DNA of 63,299 bases, counting the filler, from Hyphochytrium catenoides (taxonomy: Eukaryota > Protista > Hyphochytriomycota), in NCBI GenBank assembly GCA_900088475.1. It is 3 parts of 3 records of this genome, joined end to end, with 100 filler letters (N's around TTAATTAATTAA, not from the genome) between each part and the next. Parts side by side here need not be neighbours in the genome. Positions count along the whole stretch, not along the records: positions 1 to 28,961 come from FLMG01002281.1; 2 more parts are not named here. The stretch is one strand, 5' to 3'. Both the position numbers and the translations under genes were made by a program. This document shows, piece by piece, positions 1 through 17,600 of this stretch. Position 1 is the first letter of the stretch; every line of letters begins with the position of its first letter. Under the pieces are notes generated by a model. It was given only the letters and a program-made list of their open reading frames with translations. It ran no database searches and had not been told where the DNA came from.

Positions 1-1963
1 CGGTAGACCCCATCCTTCGTGACAAAAGAGAAAACCTCGCCTGCCGCCTCAGTGATTGCCACTTGAGAAAATCCTTCTACGCAACCCATCACGGTGACCA
101 GCTCGCTCCATTTAAGCTTTCTAAGATGTCATCTATCCTGGGAATCTCATGTGGATAATCCTTTAGCATCTTGTTGATGGTGCTCAGGTCTAGAATAGGT
201 CTATCTCCTCCTGCTGGCTTCCTCACGAGAATGAAAGGTGAATTCCACATTGAGAATTGCGAAGGCTTCACTATCCCTTTCTTGACTAGTTCTCCGACAT
301 GCTCCCTTATCTTCTCTTCCTCTGACTTAGATAGTCGATACTGAGGTGTGTAGACTGGTATTTGCCTGTCAATGTCCACGTCCACTACCATGTCCTTAAA
401 GGTCCCAAGCTTCTCTCCTTCGACCCACATAACGTCCACATACTTTAACAGTTTCGCCCTTAACTGCTTGCGTTGGCTCTCGTCCCTGATGTGGCTGACC
501 TTTGCGTTAATCAGCTCCACCTTTTCCTTAAGGTGTGAAGCTTCTCCTGTTCTTTTTACACGCTTGGGTGATTGCAGCTCCACTTCGTCGTTGTTACTCT
601 CTAGTGTCAAGGTTGAACCTCCATCATGAAGTGCAATCTCCATCCTTACTATGTCATAAATATTAGTTCCTATCAAGATCGGGGGATCAGTGTCCTCCAC
701 CACATGGAACCGTCCTTTAACAAATAGTCCTTCTATACATACGCTCAAGTTGACATAGCCGTATGCTCCAATCGTTGAGTCCGTAGATGCACCGCCAACC
801 TGATGCCTCTTCTCTTCGTACTTTATTCCGTTTTTCTCCAAAAAGACTTTAGATACCAAGGATATTCTAGCTCCCGAATCGAACTCAGCCTTAGCGTAGG
901 CTCCATTGACCAACACGTCGCGTAACAAAATTTGATTTCCCCTGGGTCTTGTTCTTCTCTCTTCAGGTCCTTCCTCTCCAGCAGATGACAAAATTGTGGG
1001 TAATACGGGAAGCGCCTGCTCTGCCCTCAAGGCTTCCCTTCGTCTTTTCCCTGAAGCTCCTCGAGGATTCCCTCCTTGATCTTCTTCACCAACACGTTGC
1101 TGACCTCCTCGAGCTTCTTCGCGGCTACTAGANNNNNNNNNNNNNNNNNNNNNNNNNNNNNNNNNNNNNNNNNNNNNNNNNNNNNCTGGCCTCTCTGCCT
1201 CTTCCACGGCTTCCCCTTGTCTCTCTTCTTATCATAACGAGGTCGCGTAGGGTTTTCTGTTGTGGACGTCTGTCGACCCGGAGCCTTCCCGCTTGAATCC
1301 GCTGTAAACTCCCTGGTGCGTAGGATCACCTTGTACAGCTCATTCCACTCCGTCCATGAACTAGGCTTCCTGAGCTTGTCATCAATGGCTCGTTGCTCAG
1401 TGAGGGATAGAGCATTCTCCATTAGCATGTCTGCCATTTCCTCAAGGCTTAAGGTCCTTTTATACACCTCCTCATAGGCTTTCGCATACTGCTCCACTTG
1501 CTTGACCTTCTTGGCATTCAGATTCTCCCATGCCTCCTGTGACATGTCCGTGGGAAATTCCATGGCGGTAATGCCAGCCTCCATCAGACGAAGCTCCTTC
1601 ATAGATTTGCCATCCCTCGAGAGAGCGTAGACGTCCATTAAGAATTGACGACCGTCAGCGTACGTAGCTCTGACCTTGACGCGCCAATCGCTCCGCATTA
1701 TCCTTAACAGCTCCCACACTTCGATCCTTATCCTTAACAGCTCCCACACTTCGATTGAGAAGAATGTGTAGCTTTTGCTGGTCCCCATATAGGTGACTTT
1801 TCGCTATCCTGTCAAACGTCTGGAAATACTCGCCAATGGTAGGGTTGCTGCGTTTGTCCCCTGTTCTGCCAAACAGCTTAGGAAACTCCTCGAACTGCAA
1901 CTTCCCAACGCCTCTACCATCCAGCGACAAATCCACAATTCTCCTCGCCGCCCTTGTTACCAT
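1..1963 (-). mobile_element. Degenerate Ty3/Gypsy-type LTR retrotransposon (gag - protease - start of RT), running off the left edge of the window
   Basis: Gag-like ORF from ATG 1963, aspartic protease motif (AEFDSGARISLVS...ILIGTN), then RT N-terminus (LVKKGIVKPS..WNSPFILVRK..RPILDL..IN..IPRIDDILESLNGASW). PR directly followed by RT is the Ty3/Gypsy order. Frameshifts at ~1659-1666 and ~96-98. LTR boundaries not resolved; 54-N gap at 1133-1186. Confidence 0.92.
1007..1051 (-). promoter_or_regulatory. -1 programmed ribosomal frameshift signal (gag to pol)
   Basis: Heptamer G GGA AAA (1051-1045) in the gag frame, 6-nt spacer, then hairpin GGGAAGC...GCUUCCC (1038-1007). Pol is in the -1 frame and the gag TGA lies 5 codons after the heptamer. 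Confidence 0.8.
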
Positions 1964-3065
1964 GTACGTTTCTACCCTGTTTGTAGGCTAGATCCGTCTC
2001 TGTCTCCGACTCGGTCTCAATGCTCAACTCCACAACAAAGGTCTCCAGAATCTCTGCTAAATCTCTGTTATCTGCGAAATTGTGAAGTCCCTACCAAACA
2101 GTCTGGCGCCTGTTCGGTAGGTAGGGGGGCAATCACTCCTGACTATCCTAGAGAACTAGGCCGTTAACGTCCTGAAACTATCACAGTGCTACAGAACATT
2201 ATTGATCAGATGAAAGATTGGGCTAGCAATTTTGATTAACTTGATCACTGTTTGCCAGAACTTTTGAGTTTGCAGACATGTTTTGGAAGTGGGGAAAATG
2301 TTACCAACAATAGCCTGCAAAACACATGATGGGCTCTGGACCAATTACAGAGAGGAGAAGTCCCATCACAGCCAATCAGAAAGCTTCCTTCTTTATAAAG
2401 CTAAGATCCGATTGGTGGATCACGGTTATCACACCTCAGATATTTCTTAGGCTCTTTTTCGGTTATCAGATAATAGATCTAACAGCCTTTGATCTATTTA
2501 TCAGAAGAAGAGGAAAATGAAAGTGTCGTTTCGTCCTGAGGAAGATGCGCTAGGAAGAGAGAGGAGAAGAGAGGCTAAAGCTATTGGCAGGAGAGAAAGA
2601 CGCAGTGCGACGTGGAAGAGAGACACGACAGAAGCACGAGTTGAGACCTGGAAGCCTGGAAGAGAGGTCGGACAGGGCAGGGAGGGGAGAGGAGAAGAGA
2701 GCGAGAGTGGGAAATGGGAAAAGAGTAGACAGGCAAAGCGAGGAGAGGGAAGAAAGCAACCTGCCCAGTGAGTGAGGCCAGACGCGCGGTCGAGGGGCAT
2801 CTGTGAGGAGACACAAGCCCCAGGGACCGAGTAAGGACAAACGGCATGCCGGATTAAAAGACAGCGCGTGGAGGACGGGCAAAGAAAGAGCGATAGACAA
2901 GAAGACTGAGATACAGAAAGCAAGGAGGCCTGTTTCCCGCTTATTATACTTCTGGAGGCTCTTGCGGACGCTCGACGGTCCCTAGAGTGCTTCACAACAG
3001 TAGTGCCTCGGCCAGGTCAACTAGGGATCTCCTACCTAGAGAGCTCCGTCGTGAGGAAGTGCAGG

Positions 3066-4280: not shown

Positions 4281-5564
4281 CATCTCACCTTCTCTCTCTC
4301 TCTTTTCTTTCTCAATATTTCTTGCTCTGCCTCTCTTTCGTTTCTCATGTTTCTCTCCCTCTCCATGTGACTGTCCGTGTGTCTTATTTTCTCTCTATTC
4401 TATTTCTCTCTTGCCTCTGCAGAGCCGTTAACAGAGGGCTGGTCTCACCCGTACGACTCCTACTATCTCATCCACACTCAGCATGTCCGGCGCTCGATCT
4501 CAAGGACTGTGCAGGCAGAACGGTGAGGTGCTGACATGAGAGGCGGGGAGCCCCAAGCTTGAACTGACCTCACGGTCTGCTTTCCATGCCTCCCGTCCTT
4601 TTCCCCCTCTCTGCAGCCGCTAGACTTATCGATCCGTCTCTTTGGACCAGACACAGCCCTAAGCCAGTATCTGAAAAAGGCTGAGAAAGAGTTCTCTTTC
4701 CTCTCTCGCGTTCGTCAAGGACAGGCGCTGCGTGTAGCAGAGGCGGAGAAGCGACAGGACAAACTGATAGAGGAATACTTTGAGGTACCCTGAAGAGCTA
4801 TGCCTGCCATTTTTGATTAGCTCTTCCGTTCCTGTCTTTCCAATATCTCATGGCCCTCCTGTCCTCGTAGTACTCTCTCTCCTGTTTTCTCTCATTCTCC
4901 CTGTTTCCCTCTCACTCACTCTCGCGTGCTCGCTAGCTCGCCTTGCTCTTCTCTCTCTCTTTCTCTCTCCTTTTTCTCTCTCTCCATTTTCTCTGCTCTC
5001 CTCAGTGAAGGTCTTACATTGTTTTCCACTTTCTCGCCTACTCCTCGTTTGTCCACAATTTTCCCACGTCTTTTCTCTTTCCTTTCTTTCAATGGCGATC
5101 TTATGTCCCTCTTCTTGCTCTAGACTTTGGAGCAGGCACAGTCTTTCCTAGCTCAAGCGGCAGCGGATTGGTCGCAGCAACATGAGAAGGCACAGGCTGT
5201 ACGGGAAGAGGAGAGAAAGAAGCTTCTCAAGTCTAAGGAGAAAGACTTTGAGAAAGAGTTTGCTCTCTTCTCTTCCTCCAAAGAAGGAAAGCAGTGGGTT
5301 AAGGAAAGGACCACACAGCTCCTTGAGGAAAGAAGAGGAGAGGGGGAAGAGAAGAAGAAGAAGCCCAAAAAGGACGTGGAGAATGCAGCCCGAGCAGAGT
5401 GGATAAAGGAACGAGAAGAAGAGAGACAAAAAGAGGTTGAAGCACTTCTTTCTCTCTCTTCTCCACCTATCACGACCGACCCCGCGTTACAGAGATATAT
5501 GCATCTTCTGGAGACTGAGGAGGATGAGAGTTTGAGGCTTTTCTCTCTTCCTTCCCTTGAGTAG
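3066..5564 (+). CDS. Ankyrin-repeat protein with charged helical C-terminus (5 exons)
   Basis: Spliced via 4 GT-AG introns: IWQAIAQGHVQE|VQRFLEGG, GATLLHLACRRGD, STPL, LLDMGADY..GSTVLHL|AVNRGL..VRLLL, KDCAGRT|PLDL. Stop TAG at 5562-5564. Confidence 0.8.
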
Positions 5565-5947: not shown

Positions 5948-8900
5948 TCAAAGACGAAGAGCTCTCGTACTGATTATCCCAGTGTCTAGAAAGAACTCGG
6001 TACTTGAGGCTTCTCCTTCTTCTTCTTCTTCCACTCCAGCTTCAATCTCTTCGTCTGTCTCTTCAGGAGAGAGATAGTCTTTGCTGGGCCGGCGCAATGC
6101 TCTCCAACTCTCTCTCGCGTCCACCCAGCGATCGTTCTCTGCCTGTTCTCTCTGCTCATCGTCATCGTCATCTTCCTCCTCTTCACTGACAGTGAACGAG
6201 TTCTCTTTTGACTTTCTCTCCTCTTTCTCTCCCTCTTCCGTCCCTTCTTCTGAATCTCTCTCTTTGATGGTTGTAAGGGTAGGGGAGATGTCGTCCGGGA
6301 GCGTTGAGGAAGACTCCTCAAGAGAGAGAGAAATGTCGTCCATGTCGTACCACGTCTCTACCTGAAAAGTATGTGTCATGTCCTCTGAAGAGAGATGAGG
6401 TCTTCTCCCGCCACTCAGAGGAGAGAGAGGAGGCAAGCTCTCTCCCTCTCCCCCGTCAATTTCCTCCTCTGCTGCCGGCTTAAAGCCTAAAGAGGAAGAG
6501 ACGCCCTTGTACATGTACAAGGCAGGCATAGGAGAAGACAAAGGACGTGGAGGAGGTGTCTTCACCGTCAAAGAGCCTATCGCGGTCTGTGCACTAACAT
6601 CTTCCTGCTTCCCAGGAAGAGAGAGAGACGTCCTTGTCTTTCTCTCTCTCTCGTAATCTGCGTCGCTGCCTTCAAGAATATGTTCCTCTTCGGCCCCTTG
6701 AGAGATCAGCTGGTGGGAAAAGTGAGAGGAAGAGGAAGGAGGAACCATCGCTGGGAGTACACCTCGAGTTTCTCCTTCTTTTCTTTGGCCCTTTGCTGGG
6801 AGAAGAGCGTAGCCGTAGAGTGGACATACAAAGCCTAATGCTTTTTCTACCCCTTCATAGACAGGCCGAGAGAGCCAGGTGGCAGTACCAGCTAGTGCAT
6901 CTATTTTCTTTGCTTCTTCTCTCTCTTTCTTGAAGAGAGGGATCGAATAGCCGAGTGCATCTTCCACTCCCAGGTACATTGAACGGCAGAGAGGGGTGGT
7001 GGGCCCTTCCTTCTCCTCTCCTGCTATGGAAGGACGGGAAGAGAGAGCGGAAGGAGAGCTCAGAGGCTTCTCCTGCCTAGGATACATGGGACGGGCTGGG
7101 GTGGAGCTCTTATCTGTCTGAGAAGGAGGAAAGAGAGGGATGGAGAAGCCTAAGGCTTGCTCCACTCCTGCGTACATGGGAAGAGAGGAAACGAGAGGAT
7201 GAGAAGGGCTGCAGGCATTCTGCCTCTCCTTCTGCCTCTCTTCCACCTTCTCCCCGCTTCTCGGGCGTTTGTATCCAAGAGCTTCGTAGACGGAAGGGTA
7301 CATGGGGAGAGAGGAGCGCACGGAAGTAGGAGCAGCATGATTCTCTCTCTTCTCAAATTCCGCTCCAGCGAAGAAGCCGAGTGCCTTAAAGACTCCAGGG
7401 TACATGGCCATGCAGTTCCCTGCTTTCTCCCCACCTGCGGGCGCGGCTCTCATCTCTTCTTTTCCCGCAAGTGGCTCTTTGCTTCCTAGCACTTCACCAC
7501 GTTTCTGTTTCTCTGAATGAGCTTCTTCGATAACTGCCGCCTCCATCTCAGGCTCCTCGGTAGAGGCTTCCAGGGAGTTATCAGTGTACCTTCTTTCTCT
7601 GTCCTGTTCGTCTTCTTCTGGTGCTGCGCGAAGCTGAAATCCGAGAGCGCGAAAGACCCTTGGATACATAGACTTCGTACTGGATGGAGAAGAGCTTATG
7701 TCTTCTTTCTCTTGGTGGACGCGTCTCTCTTTGTTAGTGGCTCTGGCCCTGTATCTTAAAGACTTAAAGACTCCAGGGTACATGGAAGCTTGTTCCCTAG
7801 CCAAGCTCTCGCACTCTTCCTCAAGGTTGGCGGAGAGGTTAGACGGTGGAGAGGTCTGCAGAGGAAGAGAAATAGGCTGAGATATTGAAGAGAGAGAAGG
7901 ACCGTCGTGGGCGAGGATGAGCGTTGCTTTGTCCCCCAATCCTAAAGCCTTGGTCAGGATGGAGATGTACATGGAACTCAGGGGGTCGTGCACAGCAGAA
8001 GCAGAAGTGGAAGGAGGAGATACTTTGCAAAGAGAAGAAGCGGACTCCATCCCAGGAGAGAAAGAGGGAGAAGAAATGGAATCAAAGGGAGAAGAAGAAG
8101 AAGCGTCAGCGGAAGCACAAGAGGAGCGAAAAGAGTAAGAGAAACCGAGTGCGTTGGCCACTCCAGGGTACATTGTCTCCTCGGAGGCCGCAAGGAGCTG
8201 TCCAGATGGGGAGAGAAGAGAGAGAGAGGGACGAAAAGGGCAGGCTCCGCTGTCGGAAGGAGGAGGATAGTTGAAGCCCAGAGCTGCCCTTACACCAGGG
8301 TACATAGAGGCAGATGCAGTGGCAATTTCTCCGCCAGACAAAGAAATACCTCTTCCCTGTTCCATTGGCAGTTCTTTTCCTAGTTCTTCTTCAGCTCTCA
8401 ACGCCTTCTCGCTCTGTGTCTTTCTCTCCTCTCTATCTCTCGCAGACGGTGTAATGGAGGAGAAGCCAAGAGAGCAAGCAACGCCTGGGTACATGTACCT
8501 TGAGTTCACACTTCCGCAAAAGAGAAGAGCGCCGCATCCTTTTCTCTCTTGTCCTGCCTCTTGCGGTAGATACTCTGCCGCTTCCTCTCCCTTCTCCTCC
8601 ACTTCCTCATCAATAATACGGATGCTCCGCCTCACCATGGCTATGGGCTGGGAGCTCGAGAGAGCATCAGATGGTCCATCAGCAACAGAGTAGCCATAGG
8701 CACTCATCGTCCCACAGACGATTCCGATCACCACATCGTCCGTTTCAATAGTAGGAGACGGAGGGATGTTCTCTTGATCTGGATCCTCCGCACTTTCCTT
8801 GTTGCTAGAGCAATCTCCCTCCTTGGACGTCCACCCCAGGCTCAGTGCCACACCTTCATACATATACCGGGCGCTGATCACGCCACGAAGATGGTGGAGG

Positions 8901-10981
8901 ACTGTCCCATCTCTCTCTCTTTGCAGTTCTTGCAAGTGCATCCTGCCATCTGCACTCACTACTTCTCTCTCTACTTCCAAAGAATTAGACTTGTCTGCTG
9001 TCTTCCGGTCTTCCTCTGTATCCGCTTTCATCCTATAGCCAAGACTGGCTTGGACACCTGGGTACATGGTGCTTTGATCATAAGATGCTTGAGCTTGGAA
9101 GGCTGGAGATGGCTCTTTCGGTGAGGCTGAGAATCTCTCTGGGTAGCGCTGGGAGAAGAGCTCTTTCATGAAGACATCCACTGATCGTTTCACTTCCTCA
9201 ATCTCCTGATTACCAAGCGGAAGCTGTGAGGCAGCTCCATTGATTGTTGACTGGAGATCTGTTTCCTCTCCATCTTTCTTCCCTTCTACATCGCGCATAC
9301 CTCTGGCTTGAACTTGGTGTACGCTGTCTGCTTTGTCAGTCTCTGTCATTGCTTTCTGGTCCGTAACGCATCCTCTGGGAAAGAGGAGCTTAAAAAAGAG
9401 ATCCACTGACTCGGAGACGGCGGCATTGAGAGACTGATCTGCCGTCTTCAATGCGACTGGCGCCTCTCTCCTGGGTGAAGTTACTCTCTCTTTATGGTGA
9501 CTTTTTGAAATTTCCCGCGTGGAAGCGGTGGACAATCCTACCCGATTCTTACTCTCCTGCTCTTGCTCTTGTCTCACTCTCTCTGCCAGAGCCGGCAGCA
9601 TGAAGAAATCTGCCTCTGCTAGCAGCTGCGACGTGTCTATGCCCGCTGCCTTCGCAGCCCCGAGGACAGAAAAGCTTCCAGATGTCCGAAGAAACTCCAG
9701 AACGATCTGGAAGATCTTTGGGTTTCTGTCAATGAAGAACTCTCCATTGCCATTCTGAGGCCAAAGGTCGCCGCCTAACGCGCTAAAAAGAGTCTCTGGA
9801 TAGCGGGTGAGAGTCTTCGTCGTCGTTGTGAAGAGCTCTCCGCCTACATTGAGCTTAACGGCGTTGTTGACCTGCTGATAGAAGCCTCCGTGCAACCTGG
9901 TCGTTAAGGAATGAAGATGTCTTCTCTTTCTTTCGAGCTCCGTCTCTGGAGACTCTGCAATCTCTTCCTCTATTTTCGATCTCAGCTGGGGAAGAAGAAA
10001 GAAGTCTGCCTCAGCTAGTAGCTCTTCCACAGAGACGCCTAGTGCAGCACCAGACGAAAGGAGACAATACCGCGAGGGCGCGCGGAGATAGCCTAGAATG
10101 AGCTCAAAAGCTCTGGGACTCCTGTCGATGAAGAACTCTCCTTCTGAAGAGGCTGGCCAAGTGTCTCCGCCCAGACAGTCGAAGAGACTACCCTGGAATC
10201 GAGTCAGAGTTCTGAGCGTGGTCGTGAAGCGCTGTCCTCCTACGTTCAAAGAGACAGAGTTGCGTTGATTCTGATAAAAGCCTCCCTGAAGCCGACAAGA
10301 GATAGCGCGGATGTGCTCTCTTTGTAGAGCTATGTCCCTTCTTTCTTTTTCCAGCTTGTCCTGCTCCTTTCTGACAACCCTCAGCATCTCTGTCTCTGGA
10401 CTCTCCCGAAGCTCTCTTTGGATCTTCTCCTTCATTGAGGAGAGCATGAAGAAATCCACCTCTCCTAGCAGCTCTTCGGCTGAGATGCCAAGAGCTGCAG
10501 CAGCAGGAAGGATAGAGCAGTGAGACGGAGAACGCAGATAGCCCAGAATAAGCTCAAAGGCCCTTGGATTTCTGTCAATGTAGAACTCTCCGTTAGGCCC
10601 TGCAGGCCACGTCTCCCCTCCCAAGCTGGAGAACAGACTCTCGGGGAACTGAGAGAAAGTCCTTCGGCTGGCAGTGAAGCGCTTTCCCCCTACATTTATC
10701 GTCACACTGGCCCTAATATTTTGTTGGAGGCCACCCCTCAACCGCTGTGAGATAGCTTGAAGGTGCTCCCTCTGTCTCTCTATGTTGATTCTTTCTTCCT
10801 CCAGTTCGGCTCTATCCTTCTCAAGCGCGAGGAGCGCAGCCTGTTGCTGCTCTATCCCTGCCTGAACGGTCCTGGCCGTGTCCTGCAGGCTTCGAAGAGT
10901 ATCAACATAATGGTCAATGGACTGCGCACTGGACTGTAAGTCCTGCAGCGTTGAAGATAAAGACTCTACGTCAGGAGCCAT
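5948..10981 (-). CDS. Intronless 1677-aa protein: three tandem KCTD/T1-type BTB domains, long low-complexity region with a repeated short motif, acidic tail
   Basis: Uninterrupted 5-kb ORF; first ATG at 10981 (track start 11032 is TTG). Three copies of V.(I/L)NVGG..F..T..T....P.SLF..L...GEF(F/Y)IDR.P..F..IL.(Y/F)LR...LL.E.DFF.L at ~10708-10440, ~10260-9985, ~9862-9588. Confidence 0.93.
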   Translation of the reverse strand: MAPDVESLSSTLQDLQSSAQSIDHYVDTLRSLQDTARTVQAGIEQQQAALLALEKDRAELEEERINIERQREHLQAISQRLRGGLQQNIRASVTINVGGKRFTASRRTFSQFPESLFSSLGGETWPAGPNGEFYIDRNPRAFELILGYLRSPSHCSILPAAAALGISAEELLGEVDFFMLSSMKEKIQRELRESPETEMLRVVRKEQDKLEKERRDIALQREHIRAISCRLQGGFYQNQRNSVSLNVGGQRFTTTLRTLTRFQGSLFDCLGGDTWPASSEGEFFIDRSPRAFELILGYLRAPSRYCLLSSGAALGVSVEELLAEADFFLLPQLRSKIEEEIAESPETELERKRRHLHSLTTRLHGGFYQQVNNAVKLNVGGELFTTTTKTLTRYPETLFSALGGDLWPQNGNGEFFIDRNPKIFQIVLEFLRTSGSFSVLGAAKAAGIDTSQLLAEADFFMLPALAERVRQEQEQESKNRVGLSTASTREISKSHHKERVTSPRREAPVALKTADQSLNAAVSESVDLFFKLLFPRGCVTDQKAMTETDKADSVHQVQARGMRDVEGKKDGEETDLQSTINGAASQLPLGNQEIEEVKRSVDVFMKELFSQRYPERFSASPKEPSPAFQAQASYDQSTMYPGVQASLGYRMKADTEEDRKTADKSNSLEVEREVVSADGRMHLQELQRERDGTVLHHLRGVISARYMYEGVALSLGWTSKEGDCSSNKESAEDPDQENIPPSPTIETDDVVIGIVCGTMSAYGYSVADGPSDALSSSQPIAMVRRSIRIIDEEVEEKGEEAAEYLPQEAGQERKGCGALLFCGSVNSRYMYPGVACSLGFSSITPSARDREERKTQSEKALRAEEELGKELPMEQGRGISLSGGEIATASASMYPGVRAALGFNYPPPSDSGACPFRPSLSLLSPSGQLLAASEETMYPGVANALGFSYSFRSSCASADASSSSPFDSISSPSFSPGMESASSLCKVSPPSTSASAVHDPLSSMYISILTKALGLGDKATLILAHDGPSLSSISQPISLPLQTSPPSNLSANLEEECESLAREQASMYPGVFKSLRYRARATNKERRVHQEKEDISSSPSSTKSMYPRVFRALGFQLRAAPEEDEQDRERRYTDNSLEASTEEPEMEAAVIEEAHSEKQKRGEVLGSKEPLAGKEEMRAAPAGGEKAGNCMAMYPGVFKALGFFAGAEFEKRENHAAPTSVRSSLPMYPSVYEALGYKRPRSGEKVEERQKERQNACSPSHPLVSSLPMYAGVEQALGFSIPLFPPSQTDKSSTPARPMYPRQEKPLSSPSALSSRPSIAGEEKEGPTTPLCRSMYLGVEDALGYSIPLFKKEREEAKKIDALAGTATWLSRPVYEGVEKALGFVCPLYGYALLPAKGQRKEGETRGVLPAMVPPSSSSHFSHQLISQGAEEEHILEGSDADYERERKTRTSLSLPGKQEDVSAQTAIGSLTVKTPPPRPLSSPMPALYMYKGVSSSLGFKPAAEEEIDGGEGESLPPLSPLSGGRRPHLSSEDMTHTFQVETWYDMDDISLSLEESSSTLPDDISPTLTTIKERDSEEGTEEGEKEERKSKENSFTVSEEEEDDDDDEQREQAENDRWVDARESWRALRRPSKDYLSPEETDEEIEAGVEEEEEGEASSTEFFLDTGIISTRALRL

Positions 10982-11402
10982 TCTCACAGAGCACGAGGTC
11001 CGCCTCGAGGTCCCCACTTCGTGATGCGCCAATAGAAAGCAGTAGTAAGCTCGCGGGAGGCGCTCTGCTCTGCCGCTAGGTCAAGGACATCAGCCGAGGG
11101 TGAAGCTGCCAAGCAAACAGAGATTCTCTTTCTTGTTGGTCAGAGTTCAGAACGTCGAAAGAAGCTGGGACCACTGCGCGAGGTGGCAGCGAAAGAAAGA
11201 GTGGCAGCGAGCTTTCCCGTCGTCTTACACTCTTCTCGCTTTCCTCCCTTTGCCTCCCACAGCCAGATCTAAAAAGTGGTACACCGTTCGGGTTGATGAT
11301 GATAGAAGTGTCTTTGACTTGCTCTCCCTGAGTCTTCCGCTCTCTAAATGCTGCTTTTCACTTCGTGTGTTTGGCCCCCCTGAGCAGCCCCTGTTCTCTA
11401 TC

Positions 11403-11449
<47 letters not shown>

Positions 11450-14400
11450 TATGTCTCCCTCTCGCTCCTGTCTCCACCTCTCTCACTTTTGGTTCTCGTG
11501 CCTCTTCGCCTTCGTCCATACCTACAAGCCGCAGGGCTTGACCGAAGCTGTAGGCTCCTCTCTATCCTACACACTCTCTCTCTTTCTCTCTCTCTCTCTT
11601 GCCAGCGCTCTGGCTGTGGAAGCTCACCTCTCTTTATCCCAGTTCCCTCTCTCGCACCCGCTAGTGTTGACGTTTGAGCTGATATCCTCCTCCTCTCTCT
11701 CTCTCTTTCTCTTCTCTCCCTTTCTCTTCTCTCTCTTTCTCTCTCTCTCTCTCTTTCCTCTCTCTCTCTCTGTTTCCCGCCCTGGTCCCCGCACTCTGTC
11801 TTCCCTGGCTCTCTTGCCCTTTGAAATGCAGTGGATGTTCGAGAGCCAGAAGCACTTTTGGTGTGATTCTGATCCGAACTCACTATTCTCGATGCGCCTT
11901 ATATAGTTGGACTAATATTAAATTCGTCAGATCTGTATTCAGGATGTGAAGATTGATGAAGGGGCACTATCACAGCCAAACTGGAAATCTTTCCAGCAAG
12001 GGAATCTTCTCGAAATAATTCTTTCGCCGTTTATTTTCCCAGGCATACTAAGTGCCTCTTTGTATGAAACCTTTCTTTTACTTGTACAGTGGTGGAATGT
12101 TTCCCTGTAACCTCTCTGAGTCTGGTCATGTGTGGGGAACAAAACCCGCTCTCTGGCACTTGCCTCTTTTGCTGTCTCTCTTCTCTCTCTTCCTCTGTTC
12201 TGCACTCTCTCTCTCTCTCTCTCTCCTTAGCTCTCGCCTCTCAATCTCTCTGTCTGTGGTCAATCCCTGTCTCTCCTCGCCCTTTCACCCAATCATCCAA
12301 TCGCCATCAGATCCAGCCCCAGCGTTGATCACCCTCGAGAGTCTATCCTTAAAGATCGCGACTGTACAGCTGTAGACGGAAGAAGCTCGAGGCACCCGCA
12401 GTGAAGAAACGCACTCCACTTTGTAAAAGTGATGAGTGGCGAGGCCATCATTCCGAACACTTGCGACACACTACTTTTTCTCGGGAAGTCCGCTTCCCCA
12501 TGAGCGTTATAGATGCCAGCAGCTGCGGGAGCATTCTAATGCTCATTCTAGACGCTCTGAAACATGCGTAGGTGCTCTGCACAGCTGCCAGTAGCACCAG
12601 AGATGATAGCAGGGATCTGACCATCGCAAGGCAACCAATCTCAACGTTGACGACCGATAGTTGGACCCACAAAGGAGATGATGCCTTAAACACGTTTATA
12701 AAATAGCAGTACAAGGATTTAACGTCTTTTAGAGGGGTTTGCGTTAGGCAAATGAAACAGCACTGTACGGATGTCAGCCTTAGGAAGGAAGAGCTTGGAG
12801 AGCTGCTAGTTAGCTTCAGGCGTTTCCCGCTTTGCGAAAAGCAGCCAGAAACGTAAGGCTTTTACTGACAAACAGAGAGCTTGCCACAGGTGAGGCACAT
12901 CACACCGTCTATTATACGGGAGGGTCTCTCTAATATTGACCAAGGGAGACGCGGCAAGCCAAGCTCTAACAAGAGCTGAACTCATTCTCGAAAGTAACGC
13001 TGAACAGAAAGGAAGGAAAGGAGACGTCGAATGAAAGGGTACGATAGCCTTCGGCCGAGGGGAGGAACTACCCGCGACGCCACTGATTCTTCGGGGCGAG
13101 GTGTGGACGAGCTCTGAAGATATGAAAGAGCTGGTAGCCCAACCACAGAATCGTGATAAGCAGCTAGAAGGTGTCAGGTGCTAACTAACTCGCCAGGAAG
13201 GCCCTATCATGCCGAGGGTTTTTCCTTGCGTCGTACGGCTACTGCGGAAGCCTTTTTGGCTGGTAGTCGTTATGACATGGCCAAGGTCGTCAAGCGCGCA
13301 CATGTAGCATGACCTAAGACAAGGTAGCAGTCCACAGATGACGAGGAGGGCTTCTAGGTGACTGTACGGAAGGAGACACAAAGCGCAGACGTGGGCACAC
13401 AATTAACAGGTGAAGAGAAAAGAGAGAGCGATTCAAAGCGAGCCGCTACCGAAACGCAAGGTAAGTAAAGACTGTATTAAGCCATTTAGTGCACCAAGAC
13501 AGAGCGAGAGAGACCTACAAAGATGGCGAGAGACGGAAACTAAAGAGAGAGTGCGAAGAAGTCATTGAGTGAGTGAGGAGAGAGAGAGAACAAAAGAAGG
13601 AGGGAGGCAGAAAGAGAGGTGGAGAGGAGAAGAGGAAGAGTAATTGATGAGGATCCGATGATGTGTGATGAGGATGATGGATGAGGATCCTACAGCCTTC
13701 AACCACATCTGCCCTTGAACTTGAAGGAAGTGATTCTGATAGGGGTGGCNNNNNNNNNNNNNTCGGGATATTGGCGGATCTGTTACACATAAAGAAAAGG
13801 TTGAAAATATCCAATCAACGGGTATCTCCCTGGCCACTAGTACGCTCTGCACTTGCTCTAACGTCATAGAGATTAATAGAGAATCTGGCGTAGTAATACC
13901 TTGAACTAACAGTCACGATCTCATCCTTGTCGAAGAAAGAGACAGAGAGAAAAGGCTGGGGGGAAGAGAGAAAAAGAGAGAGAGAGAGTAAGAGAGAGAC
14001 AGAGAGAGACAGGGAGAGAGAGAAAGAGAGACGAAGAGAGAGACGAGAAAGAGGGAAGACAATAATCATACAGTAGGAAAGACACGGTAGAAAGGTCAGG
14101 TCACGGAGAGGAAGAGAGATAAAAGCTGCGAGACAGAGAGAGCCAGAGAGACAGGAAGACTAGAAGAAAGAGAGGGAAGAGAAAGAGAGAGAGAGAATCT
14201 GGTTCCTGCATCAGCCTACGTAGCGGCCCGAGCCCCAATGACCATGCGAGAGAGACGCGAGAGGAAAGGCACAGGTCATGAATCTGTGCATCTATTGATA
14301 AGAACTTGTAAGGCCTTGGTACTTTCCCGCAGACAGTCTAACTTTTCCTCTGCACCAGAGAGGACTGCAGACACCAAGAGTTGGAGTTTATCCCCTGCAT

Positions 14401-14610
14401 TGAAGCCACGGTACCCTTGCAGGTAGAGCACCACGACTATTCGTATGAAGAGAGAGAGAGAGCACGCACGCGCGTGAGAGAGAAAGAGTGTGGGCTTGGC
14501 AGAAAGAGAGAGAGGGTATCCCAACAGAGAGGAAGAGGGCCACAAGGCTCATCACTGAAGTGTTACTCTTTTCTCCTTCGGCTGTCATCGGCCTTCACAG
14601 CTTTGTCATA

Positions 14611-17600
14611 ATGGCGACCAAGGAGCTTCAGGAGAAAGTGCTTCAGCTCTGTCTGAAGGAGAAGATCTTCGACCCTCAGTCTATCAAGGAGGATGTGGAC
14701 TATTTTTTCAATGACTTGGGCCTGCATCCCTTCTACTTCAGCACCACAGAACCAGAGATGATCGCTAAGCATATCATGGGCATCAAGGCTAACCACGTGG
14801 CGGCTGCCAGCTCTGACAAGGAATTTGAGGTGCGTAAGCGGCTCTGTCTTCTGCTCCTTGCCTCCTTCTCACTCGAGATATCGCAGATGATGAAGAACAC
14901 TCTCCTTGTTTCTTTTGGTAGCTTCCACTCTCTTTGCAGTTTGTGCTCTCTCGGTTGCTGTGTGGGCCTATCCTTCCTCCTCTGTCTGTTCCCATCCTGC
15001 TCTCTCTCTCTCAGTTTCTGGCCTGCTCAATCTCTCTGTCTCTCTCCCTGCTTCTCTCTCCACATTTCGGTCACTATCCCCTGGTCCCCAGCTATTCTGG
15101 TACCACTCGCCGTTGCATCGCGAACTAATCTCCACGTACAGGTGCTTCTTCAAGGAGAGACGGAAAACTTTGCTTTCTTTGGCGTTCGTAGTAACATCGC
15201 TGGCGGCCGCTCGCACCCTGCTACTCCTCTATCTAACAAGAAGAAGAGAAAGGGAATTCTTTCAGCTGTGGAGGAGCTTGAAAGAAAGATAGAGGAGGAA
15301 TACCTCAACAGCGGAACGGAGTATGTAGGAGACGGCGTGCCTGGCACTCTGTCTGTCTTCGACCGTAGGAGGTCAATCAACGGCTTTGAAGAGCCCAAGC
15401 AGTACAGACTGCAGTGCTATCGGTCGGAGGGGCCTCTGAAGGACTCCAAGTACCATTTGCGCCTCTATTTCCTCGCCAAGCCAGACTATGTTGATCCCTA
15501 CCCTGCAGAGGATGAAACAGATCTGAATGTCGTTGCGTCTAAGTCTTTTCTAGCCACTGGTGGGCCATTCATCAGAGAGAAGTACCAGAGTGTTATTAGA
15601 AAGGCAAAGAAGCAGATGAGCCCAGTGGTTGAGACTGACTTCTGGACAGGTAAGCAAGAGAGATTGGTTACCCCTTCGGTGTTGTTGCTTTTTTGGTAAG
15701 CCTGCAATTAACTACTCGCGCTGCTTTTTCTTTTATTGATCTTCGGTTTAGTTTGTTGCTGCACTGAGTCCGATCTCTGACATTTCTTCCTTTCTTCCTC
15801 GTGTGGCTGACCTTATATGTCATTATTTCCTCTCCTGATATTTAGAGCCCGATGGCAAGGAGAAGTGCCGCCTTACTATCGCCATTCAATTCGGAACCAC
15901 CCACTCTTACTTCGCTGGCGTGGCTGATGTCTACAGACGACATGGCTTGTACACCACAAGGAAATATGTTGAGTTCTTCAGCAATGGCATCGTCGTTTAT
16001 GCCTTTTATCTCTGCCAGCTTGACGGATCAGCTGGAGGGGCTTCATCTTTCCAAGCCAAGATGCAAAACGTCGTCTATGATGTCTCGCTTCACTTCGTCC
16101 TCCCTCGTACTTCTCTGACTCCACTACTCAAGCAGGAGTACATCACCACACAGGTAAAATACGGGTCAGAATGCTGCAGGGAGGCATGGAGAAGGATCTC
16201 TTGATAGGGAGGTTTGGGCGGGTTCTGGGATGAAAGAGAGACGGAAGAGCCTGGGTGGCCATGAGAGAGGGAAGAAGTGACATCTTGGGGACGATAGAGC
16301 ATGGAGTGATATCAAGAAGATTGAATGGGGACGGTAGCTCCTAACCCTAGCTGGATCAATGCAGGAGAGTGCCTATGCCTACGCCGCATGGAAGTTTGCT
16401 TTCCACTTTCTTCAACGGCTTCCAGATGGCTATATGACGATTGCCGAGTCTCTGAGAAAGCACGACCAAAATGCTTACTCTAGCCTTCAGAAGGTACGGT
16501 TGCTTCGTACTTCTTGCTCGTCTTTCCTAATTTTCGTCAGGCGTCTCATATGATGAGGTCACTTTATCTCATCGTCCTCATCCCTCGTAGCATTTGCTCA
16601 CGTGCCGCTCTCTTCTTTCTGCCTTTTCTAGTTGCGGTTCTCAATGAAGACGAATACTTTCACGGAAGGTCAAATCCTAGACACAATCTTTGCATGCCCA
16701 GCTGCTATCCACCGCCTATACACCGACTTCCATGCTCGATTCTGCCTGAACAATGAGGAGGTTGAGCCACAAAGCGTGATCATGGCCGATATCAGAAGGT
16801 TAGAGACTACATCCGCTACTTATCGCCATTTCCCTTCCAAAGTGACAGACAAAATTGACCCTTATGTTTTCTCTCTCTGCCTCTGCTCTTGACCAGAATG
16901 GCCTCCTCAGACCGCGAAGTGCAGATCTTTGAGACCTTCCTGCGCTTCAACCGCCACATCGTCCGGACGAACTTCTTCAAACCCAACAAGGTTGCCCTCT
17001 CATTTAGGCTGAACCCTGGCTTCCTATCCAACCAGGAATACCCCACCATACCTTATGCTATCATCTACATTGTGGGATCGGAGTTCAGGTATGGAGGAGA
17101 AACCTCTATTGACTCGACCTACCTTAGTACTCCGAGGCCCTACGTTGACCGATCACCCATCACGTCTATCCTGTTTTCCTTACTACTTGGGATCGGTCCT
17201 CTTGCTGAACTAACCCTGTGACGCTTAGGGGCTTCCATGTCCGCTTTGAGGACATTGCACGAGGCGGTATTCGGCTTATCCGCTCCTCCCACTCCCAAGT
17301 TTTCCAGAGAAACACGACGACACTCTTTGATGAGAACTACAATCTGGCCTACACCCAGCAGAAGAAAAACAAGGTAGGAGAGGCGGTTATATAACAAAAG
17401 AGAAGGGAAGGAGGGCGAGCCATGCAGGAGAGAGATGCTTAGAGAGTCACTTTTTGTTAACGCATTCTCCTGCTTTAGGATATTCCTGAGGGAGGCTCCA
17501 AGGGCACGATATTGCTCAACCTAGCACATCAGGACAAGGCCATAGTGGCCTTCAAGAAGTATATCGACTCACTGCTAGACCTTCTTCTTCCTTCTGAAGA

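Follow-up and report, generated by a model that had tools for sequence, protein, structure and literature searches.

The window analysed here, a 63,299-nucleotide stretch (filler included) of Hyphochytrium catenoides DNA from GenBank assembly GCA_900088475.1, contains a single uninterrupted open reading frame (ORF) on the minus strand at 5948–11032 that comprises 1694 codons and a stop and joins three BTB domains to a long tail carrying repeated copies of a short peptide motif. We conclude that the ORF probably encodes a KCTD-type multi-BTB protein whose disordered tail presents 14 copies of a conserved short linear motif as docking sites for one partner. The ORF is organized as follows, in positions of the window:

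10427–10705, minus strand: BTB domain 1, residues 110–202 (Pfam BTB_3 stretch 110–202 together with BTB_2, and unit alignment)
9977–10255, minus strand: BTB domain 2, about residues 260–352 (one of three BTB_2 stretches)
9587–9859, minus strand: BTB domain 3, residues 392–482 (best BTB_2 stretch)
6482–9067, minus strand: motif array
9035–9067, 8831–8863, 8462–8494, 8273–8305 and 8141–8173, minus strand: strict motif copies 1–5
7937–7972, minus strand: degenerate motif copy MYISILTKALGL
7751–7783, 7637–7669, 7373–7405 and 7271–7303, minus strand: strict motif copies 6–9
7145–7177, 6947–6979, 6830–6862 and 6482–6514, minus strand: strict motif copies 10–13
7073–7087, minus strand: motif remnant MYPRQ at residue 1316
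5951–6481, minus strand: acidic C-terminal tail, 32% Asp plus Glu

The open frame reaches 1710 codons when extended back to the upstream stop, and the first ATG is codon 18 (M18, at 10979–10981), which is the probable start and gives a protein of about 1677 residues. A (CT)14 repeat lies just beyond the stop codon. Neither of the flanking frames, one on the plus strand at 5127–5564 and a low-complexity frame at 11100–11906, resembles a further exon of this gene, and nothing suggests that the gene has additional exons; elsewhere in the genome, genes are split into many exons. The assembly searched (G000) comprises 61 Mb in 4759 contigs, with the ORF on contig C1979, and has about 50% G+C and many CT-rich tracts that are translated as 'SLSLSL', features that together with the many-exon genes recall, as an impression, a tissue-cyst-forming coccidian.

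The head of the protein matches the Pfam BTB_2 profile (PF02214) over three stretches (E = 2.9e-46, 156 bits), and a helical or coiled-coil stretch precedes BTB domain 1. Unit 2 is 57% identical to unit 1, and the three helix-plus-BTB units share 43–57% mutual identity, which argues that the head arose by internal triplication. The closest solved chains to these BTBs are SHKBP1 (4.1e-13), KCTD15 (2.6e-11), KCTD1, KCTD9, KCTD5 and the T1 domain of Kv4.3, and since these nearest relatives are KCTD proteins and a Kv4 T1 domain we classify the head as KCTD/T1-type. The original prediction, which had named three BTB domains of KCTD type ahead of the motif array, is borne out on both counts by the three aligned units and by the significant profile match and similarity to solved KCTD and Kv4 T1 chains. 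By analogy with solved KCTD/T1 BTBs, the three domains would oligomerize the scaffold. Four cullin genes are present in this genome; in the literature, neither KCTD1 nor KCTD15 binds cullin-3 (PMC7618933). There is precedent for a KCTD BTB assembly gripping a short peptide, since KCTD1 binds TFAP2A with a KD of 380 nM (PMC7618933).

BTB_2 domains are common to this protein and the KCTD family (SHKBP1, KCTD1, KCTD15, KCTD5 and KCTD9). In contrast to that family, the protein has three tandem BTBs per chain, each preceded by its own helix, and in place of a recognizable KCTD C-terminal domain it has about 1170 disordered residues (residues ~521–1694) that bear the motif array. Two other BTB_2 genes occur in the genome. 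One, L002 (G000:C3104:30077-33634), has a frame of 607 residues (703–2523, minus strand) with the unusual fusion of a BTB_2 domain (E = 3e-10) to the beginning of a beta-carbonic anhydrase (Pro_CA, E = 1.1e-12), and the other, L003 (G000:C4042), has a BTB_2 domain followed by more than 450 residues of apparent pentapeptide repeats, judged by eye, in a KCTD9-like architecture.

The motif array spans residues 656–1517 and consists of 13 strict copies of [MV]Y..V..[AS]L[GR][FYW] together with the 12-residue degenerate variant, separated copy to copy by 34–123 residues in a tail rich in Ser, Glu, Ala, Pro, Leu and Gly. Every motif string listed in the original prediction lies in the ORF within 6482–9067. 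The loose pattern Y..V...LG occurs 12 times in the tail, compared to a mean of 0.009 in 20,000 tail shuffles. DNA copies of the motif are 61–78% identical to one another, Tandem Repeats Finder detected no array in the motif region, and the fixed residues use several codons (four Val codons; Leu as CTT, CTG, CTC and TTA), which together argue for selection on the peptide, as had been proposed from the sequence. The absence of a Tandem Repeats Finder array and the limited identity of the direct repeats rule out a DNA-level repeat. AlphaFold modeling of residues 1200–1420 gave a pLDDT below 50 almost throughout, with all five motifs in that region overlapping short predicted helices; within this disordered setting the predicted helical tendency covers P3 to residue 8. 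The earlier description of unrelated spacers of variable length behind the BTB domains is likewise supported, and these spacers are predicted to be disordered. A Pfam scan of the ORF returned BTB families and two sub-threshold N-terminal matches (E up to 1) and nothing over the tail at residues 520–1694, in keeping with the earlier failure to match the motif to a named repeat family, and in a literature search the string 'MYPGV' was not found in any paper.

Three copies of the array (7145–7177, 6947–6979 and 6830–6862) and a locus on contig C4179 (L015) extend beyond the motif to LG[FY]-x-x-P-[LPF]-[FY], with the extensions SIPLF, SIPLF, VCPLY and LPPF. Between BTB domain 3 and the array, the linker at 9155–9415 (minus strand) holds two copies of a second short motif, S-V-D-[LV]-F-[FM]-K-[LE]-L-F, spotted by eye at residues 540–551 and 616–626 as SESVDLFFKLLF and RSVDVFMKELF. 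Near the C terminus, the stretch DMTHTFQVETWYDMDD (6335–6382) resembles DMSERYHVNEWYDFEGE of the BTB_2 protein L002, and the pair may represent a tail motif common to the KCTD paralogues of this genome.

Searches of the same genome with a profile of the copies and with a degenerate DNA pattern located the motif at six other places on seven contigs:

C18: MYPGVFNSLGY
C2452: MYPGVWQALGF
C429: MYPSVFTALGY
C235: MYPSVEKFLGY
C369: two motif copies
C4179 and C4690: MYNSVYESLGF

The degenerate DNA pattern for M-Y-x-x-V-x-x-x-L-G-[FY] matched 16 places, 10 in the ORF and 6 elsewhere, versus 1 for the reversed control. The loci on C4179 (G000:C4179:1-2126) and C4690 (G000:C4690:10000-14680) are near-identical around the motif exon, one of them containing an N run, and are probably an assembly duplicate or haplotig. 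The copy on C235 (L019, G000:C235:1000-9000, minus strand) has neighbouring exons that, judged by eye, appear to encode a Sec7 (BIG/GBF-type) ARF-GEF, and this trafficking regulator may be a client of the same partner. A Pfam search of exons around the other carriers in the genome gave nothing significant.

Beyond this genome, we ran hmmsearch with a profile of 20 copies (alignment A2) over a set of 1.84 billion representative proteins at a cut-off of E < 1e-3. The search returned 14 matches (best E = 4.7e-18), 11 of which carry between one and five full copies of the motif, so that the check suggested with the original prediction, a profile built from the copies, recovered the motif both in this genome and in other eukaryote-type proteins. 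The three remaining matches are not the motif: P0010 is a partial match, and P0006 and P0011 are long 'VT[SDAG]ALGYTP' arrays of bacterial or phage-like appearance, a different and unrelated repeat that matched the ALG[FY] half alone. P0004 belongs to a sister species, in which it is the near-identical counterpart, by orthology, of the C2452 locus; its contig in Logan (L026) is 93.9% identical to the H. catenoides locus L018 over 3.8 kb. The other carriers are proteins from JGI and ENA environmental assemblies, several of which have domains of eukaryotic nuclear type, namely Myb, PHD, RING or C2H2; one of these lies on a 136-kb scaffold together with a WD40 gene. In a C2H2/PHD family of four members with 41–43% overall identity, both motif copies stand as invariant islands in variable linkers, and AlphaFold places a short helix on each copy of a carrier from this family within low-confidence surroundings. 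An ESM Atlas look-up of the carrier P0008 returned generic PHD/zinc-finger neighbours alone. From 44 pooled instances we derived the consensus (S/T/N)-[MV]-Y-P-x-V-(F/W/Y/E)-x-(S/A)-L-G-(F/Y), with Pro enriched 3–5 residues downstream.

The motif is therefore a real, peptide-selected element that lies in disorder with a predicted helical tendency and is reused in unrelated proteins. Its short length, disordered and locally helical setting, conservation as islands, unrelated hosts and occurrence in pairs and arrays identify it as a short linear motif, and because it is specific to neither this protein nor this lineage we regard it as a general motif as opposed to a private repeat. The ORF holds 14 of roughly 21 copies detected in the genome and joins them to three oligomerization-type domains, which makes a high-avidity docking platform the best-supported role for the protein. 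Each copy would dock by folding into the groove of a partner protein that is shared by all carriers and widely conserved, and oligomerization of the BTBs would multiply motif valency, such that the protein would serve the cell as a high-avidity platform or sink for this partner and proteins with one or two copies would be the partner's ordinary clients. As partner, our leading candidate, at well below even odds, is the V domain encoded by the Bro1-V (ALIX-like) gene of this genome. Were the BTBs also to recruit a cullin, the partner or its cargo could become a target of ubiquitination.

Several observations weigh against this docking model. No orthologue was recovered by word-index protein searches with the tail, the BTB region and a 341-residue tail piece or by the exhaustive motif-profile search, and these blanks are silent on true absence. 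The apparent 100% invariance of Tyr, Val and Leu is partly circular, as the selection pattern for the metagenomic instances itself demanded these residues. Five of the six other genomic places hold a single copy and are known from exons rather than gene models, oligomerization and cullin binding by the BTBs are carried over by analogy with their family, and docking is inferred. The proposal in the original prediction of a multivalent docking scaffold gains strength from the presence of the motif in unrelated proteins, with the correction that the motif is private to neither protein nor lineage.

The known ligands closest to the motif are those of the ALIX/Bro1 V domain (LYPxnL), and we compared it with the ELM entries LIG_LYPXL_S_1, L_2, yS_3 and SIV_4. 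Defined ALIX ligands comprise type 1 LYPDL, type 2 LYPLT/ASL and type 3 PYKEVTEDL of SIVmac239 (PMC5995805), and in ELM the classes of LYPxL motif are the short, the long, the yeast and the SIV helical one (PMC8728146). The first five residues of the motif, [LMV]-Y-P-x-V, equal type 1 LYPDL save for Val in place of Leu, and Y-x-x-V-x-x-x-L, found in 44 of 44 instances, falls in the exact register of type 3 PYKEVTEDL (PMC5995805); the anchoring Tyr of LYPxnL ligands is likewise present in all 44, in part by how the instances were selected. The AlphaFold helix predicted over the motif is reminiscent of the helical LYPxL class (PMC8728146), and shared features extend to a hydrophobic-Tyr start followed in most instances by Pro, a hydrophobic residue at Y+3, Leu at Y+7 as in SIVmac239 type 3, a disordered setting and multiple copies in cellular clients. 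The fungal zinc-finger transcription factor PacC, for example, uses two YPx[L/I] motifs to bind PalA (PMC3346829), a parallel to the two-copy C2H2/PHD carriers. The genome also encodes a possible receptor, as one gene on contig C4225, split over many exons, combines BRO1 and ALIX_LYPXL_bnd exons with a tail rich in Pro and Tyr. Its segment 'EGKNFYSDL' lines up with 'EGRDFYADL' in the V domain of HD-PTP, which we take to be the region of ALIX Phe676.

The match to LYPxnL nevertheless fails at its defining position: [LM]YP.[LI] occurs in none of the 44 instances, Val is invariant at Y+3 whereas the ligands need Leu or Ile at Y+3 in the short form or at Y+5 in the long one, and the ORF has no YP.[LI] or YP...[LI] anywhere. 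Pro, which comes directly after the Tyr in types 1 and 2, follows it in 32 of 44 instances and is absent from a quarter; type 3 ligands lack it (PMC5995805). None of the defined classes has an equivalent of the strongly conserved L-G-[FY] end, and carriers elsewhere are mostly nuclear-type proteins. Given the missing Leu/Ile, the dispensable Pro and the unexplained L-G-[FY] end, we do not file the motif under LYPxnL, and we consider it possible though unlikely that it represents a lineage-specific form of the ALIX/Bro1 V-domain ligand and the protein a 14-valent recruiter of an ALIX-like protein and thereby of ESCRT-III. The earlier failure to match the motif to a named repeat family stands with respect to Pfam and is qualified by this resemblance to ALIX ligands minus their Leu/Ile requirement; the motif appears to be undescribed as such and nearest to the LYPxnL family. 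A more far-reaching version, to which we assign a still smaller chance, would make the motif an endogenous ALIX-like Bro1-V ligand in alveolates and other microbial eukaryotes, representing an ancient Val-type helical branch of LYPxnL, and the protein an oligomeric platform, 14-valent for the motif, that would gather ALIX and ESCRT-III, might be linked to a cullin ligase by its BTBs, and would supply the upstream recruiting step of apicomplexans. Apicomplexans lack ESCRT-0, -I and -II (PMC9159051), and an ALIX-like partner, if true, would bear on how ESCRT-III is recruited in these organisms without the upstream complexes. Our literature search returned nothing useful on Toxoplasma KCTD/BTB proteins.

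Other explanations for the array account for part of the data. Short-motif arrays with variable spacers are typical of proteins that bind a repetitive lattice, as in tau, MAP6/SAXO or nebulin repeats, and 14 copies at intervals of 34–123 residues would suit binding to microtubules, actin or a pellicle or cytoskeletal polymer, the polymer lattice named in the original prediction. The other carriers, however, are Myb, PHD, RING and C2H2 proteins and an ARF-GEF with merely one or two copies, for which a soluble hub is the better fit, and the motif, with no match in Pfam, resembles none of the known tubulin- or actin-binding motifs, so we judge a lattice ligand decidedly improbable. CRM1-type nuclear export signals of class 1c follow the spacing Phi-xxx-Phi-xxx-Phi-x-Phi. 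All 44 motif cores fit this spacing (M1, V5, L9 and F11) and carriers include nuclear-type as well as cytosolic proteins, but the export pattern is very degenerate and leaves the invariant Tyr, Pro and Gly and the 14 copies unexplained, and we give little credence to an export function. We are comparably skeptical that the motif binds its own BTB assembly or other KCTD BTBs in self-association, autoinhibition or a condensate, with the other carriers as substrates. The KCTD1 BTB pentamer does bind a short Pro/Tyr peptide of TFAP2A (PMC7618933) and multivalent head–tail contacts would yield a network, yet there are lineages and proteins in which the motif is present and no BTB is linked to it; a complex prediction of BTB1–3 (residues 95–520) with tail residues 1200–1300 scored 0.00, which is evidence neither way.

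The SHP box of p97/Cdc48 cofactors, with the consensus F-x-G-x-G-x-x-h (PMC8181520), resembles the motif in length, aromatic start, a Gly two residues on and a Leu-Gly near the end, giving Y-P-G-V-x-x-x-L-G a superficial likeness to it. A Cdc48 N-domain exon is present in the genome, and a cullin adaptor working with p97 would be biologically sensible. The first Gly is found in 18 of 44 instances, whereas the defining second Gly is absent from all of them ([FY].G.G..h in 0 of 44), which rules out an SHP box as such and leaves SHP-box-like ligands of the Cdc48/p97 N domain extremely unlikely. Scarcely credible, and already disfavoured, is the view that the copies are functionless leftovers of internal duplication or that the ORF is no real gene: no orthologue was recovered, but the 1694-codon open frame contains three significant BTB domains, the spacers have diverged beyond recognition while five or six motif positions stay fixed with varied codons, and unrelated proteins and distant lineages alike have kept the motif. 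We set aside LIR/ATG8, YxxPhi, PxVxL, FxGF, eIF4E-binding, calcineurin, PP1 and further motif classes, whose spacing or key residues appear not to fit.

A multi-BTB docking platform would have parallels in Eps15, with DPF repeats for the AP-2 appendage, and syntenin, with three LYPxL motifs for ALIX. These proteins combine many copies of one motif in disorder with an oligomerizing or modular head to gain avidity for one partner, and they differ from the present protein in both motif and head domain. Eukaryotic signalling and trafficking are wired mainly through short linear motifs, and to our knowledge described classes come almost entirely from animals, yeast and viruses. That chromatin-type proteins of unrelated environmental eukaryotes share one motif with an ARF-GEF and with a KCTD scaffold points to a hub interaction that is conserved and lies outside Pfam and, as far as we can tell, outside the motif literature. 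The 14-copy carrier offers a ready-made bait for finding the partner, and if its BTBs recruit cullin it would represent a new form of KCTD-ligase substrate recognition in which a motif array replaces the folded C-terminal domain.

Elsewhere in the window, neighbouring frames at 14488–15699 (plus strand) and 92–1207 (minus strand) have domain matches, comprising two domains of NAD-specific glutamate dehydrogenase, the N-terminal one (E = 1.8e-14) and the second (E = 6.1e-16), together with a sub-threshold match to a DDI1-like retroviral-type aspartyl protease domain (E = 7e-6).

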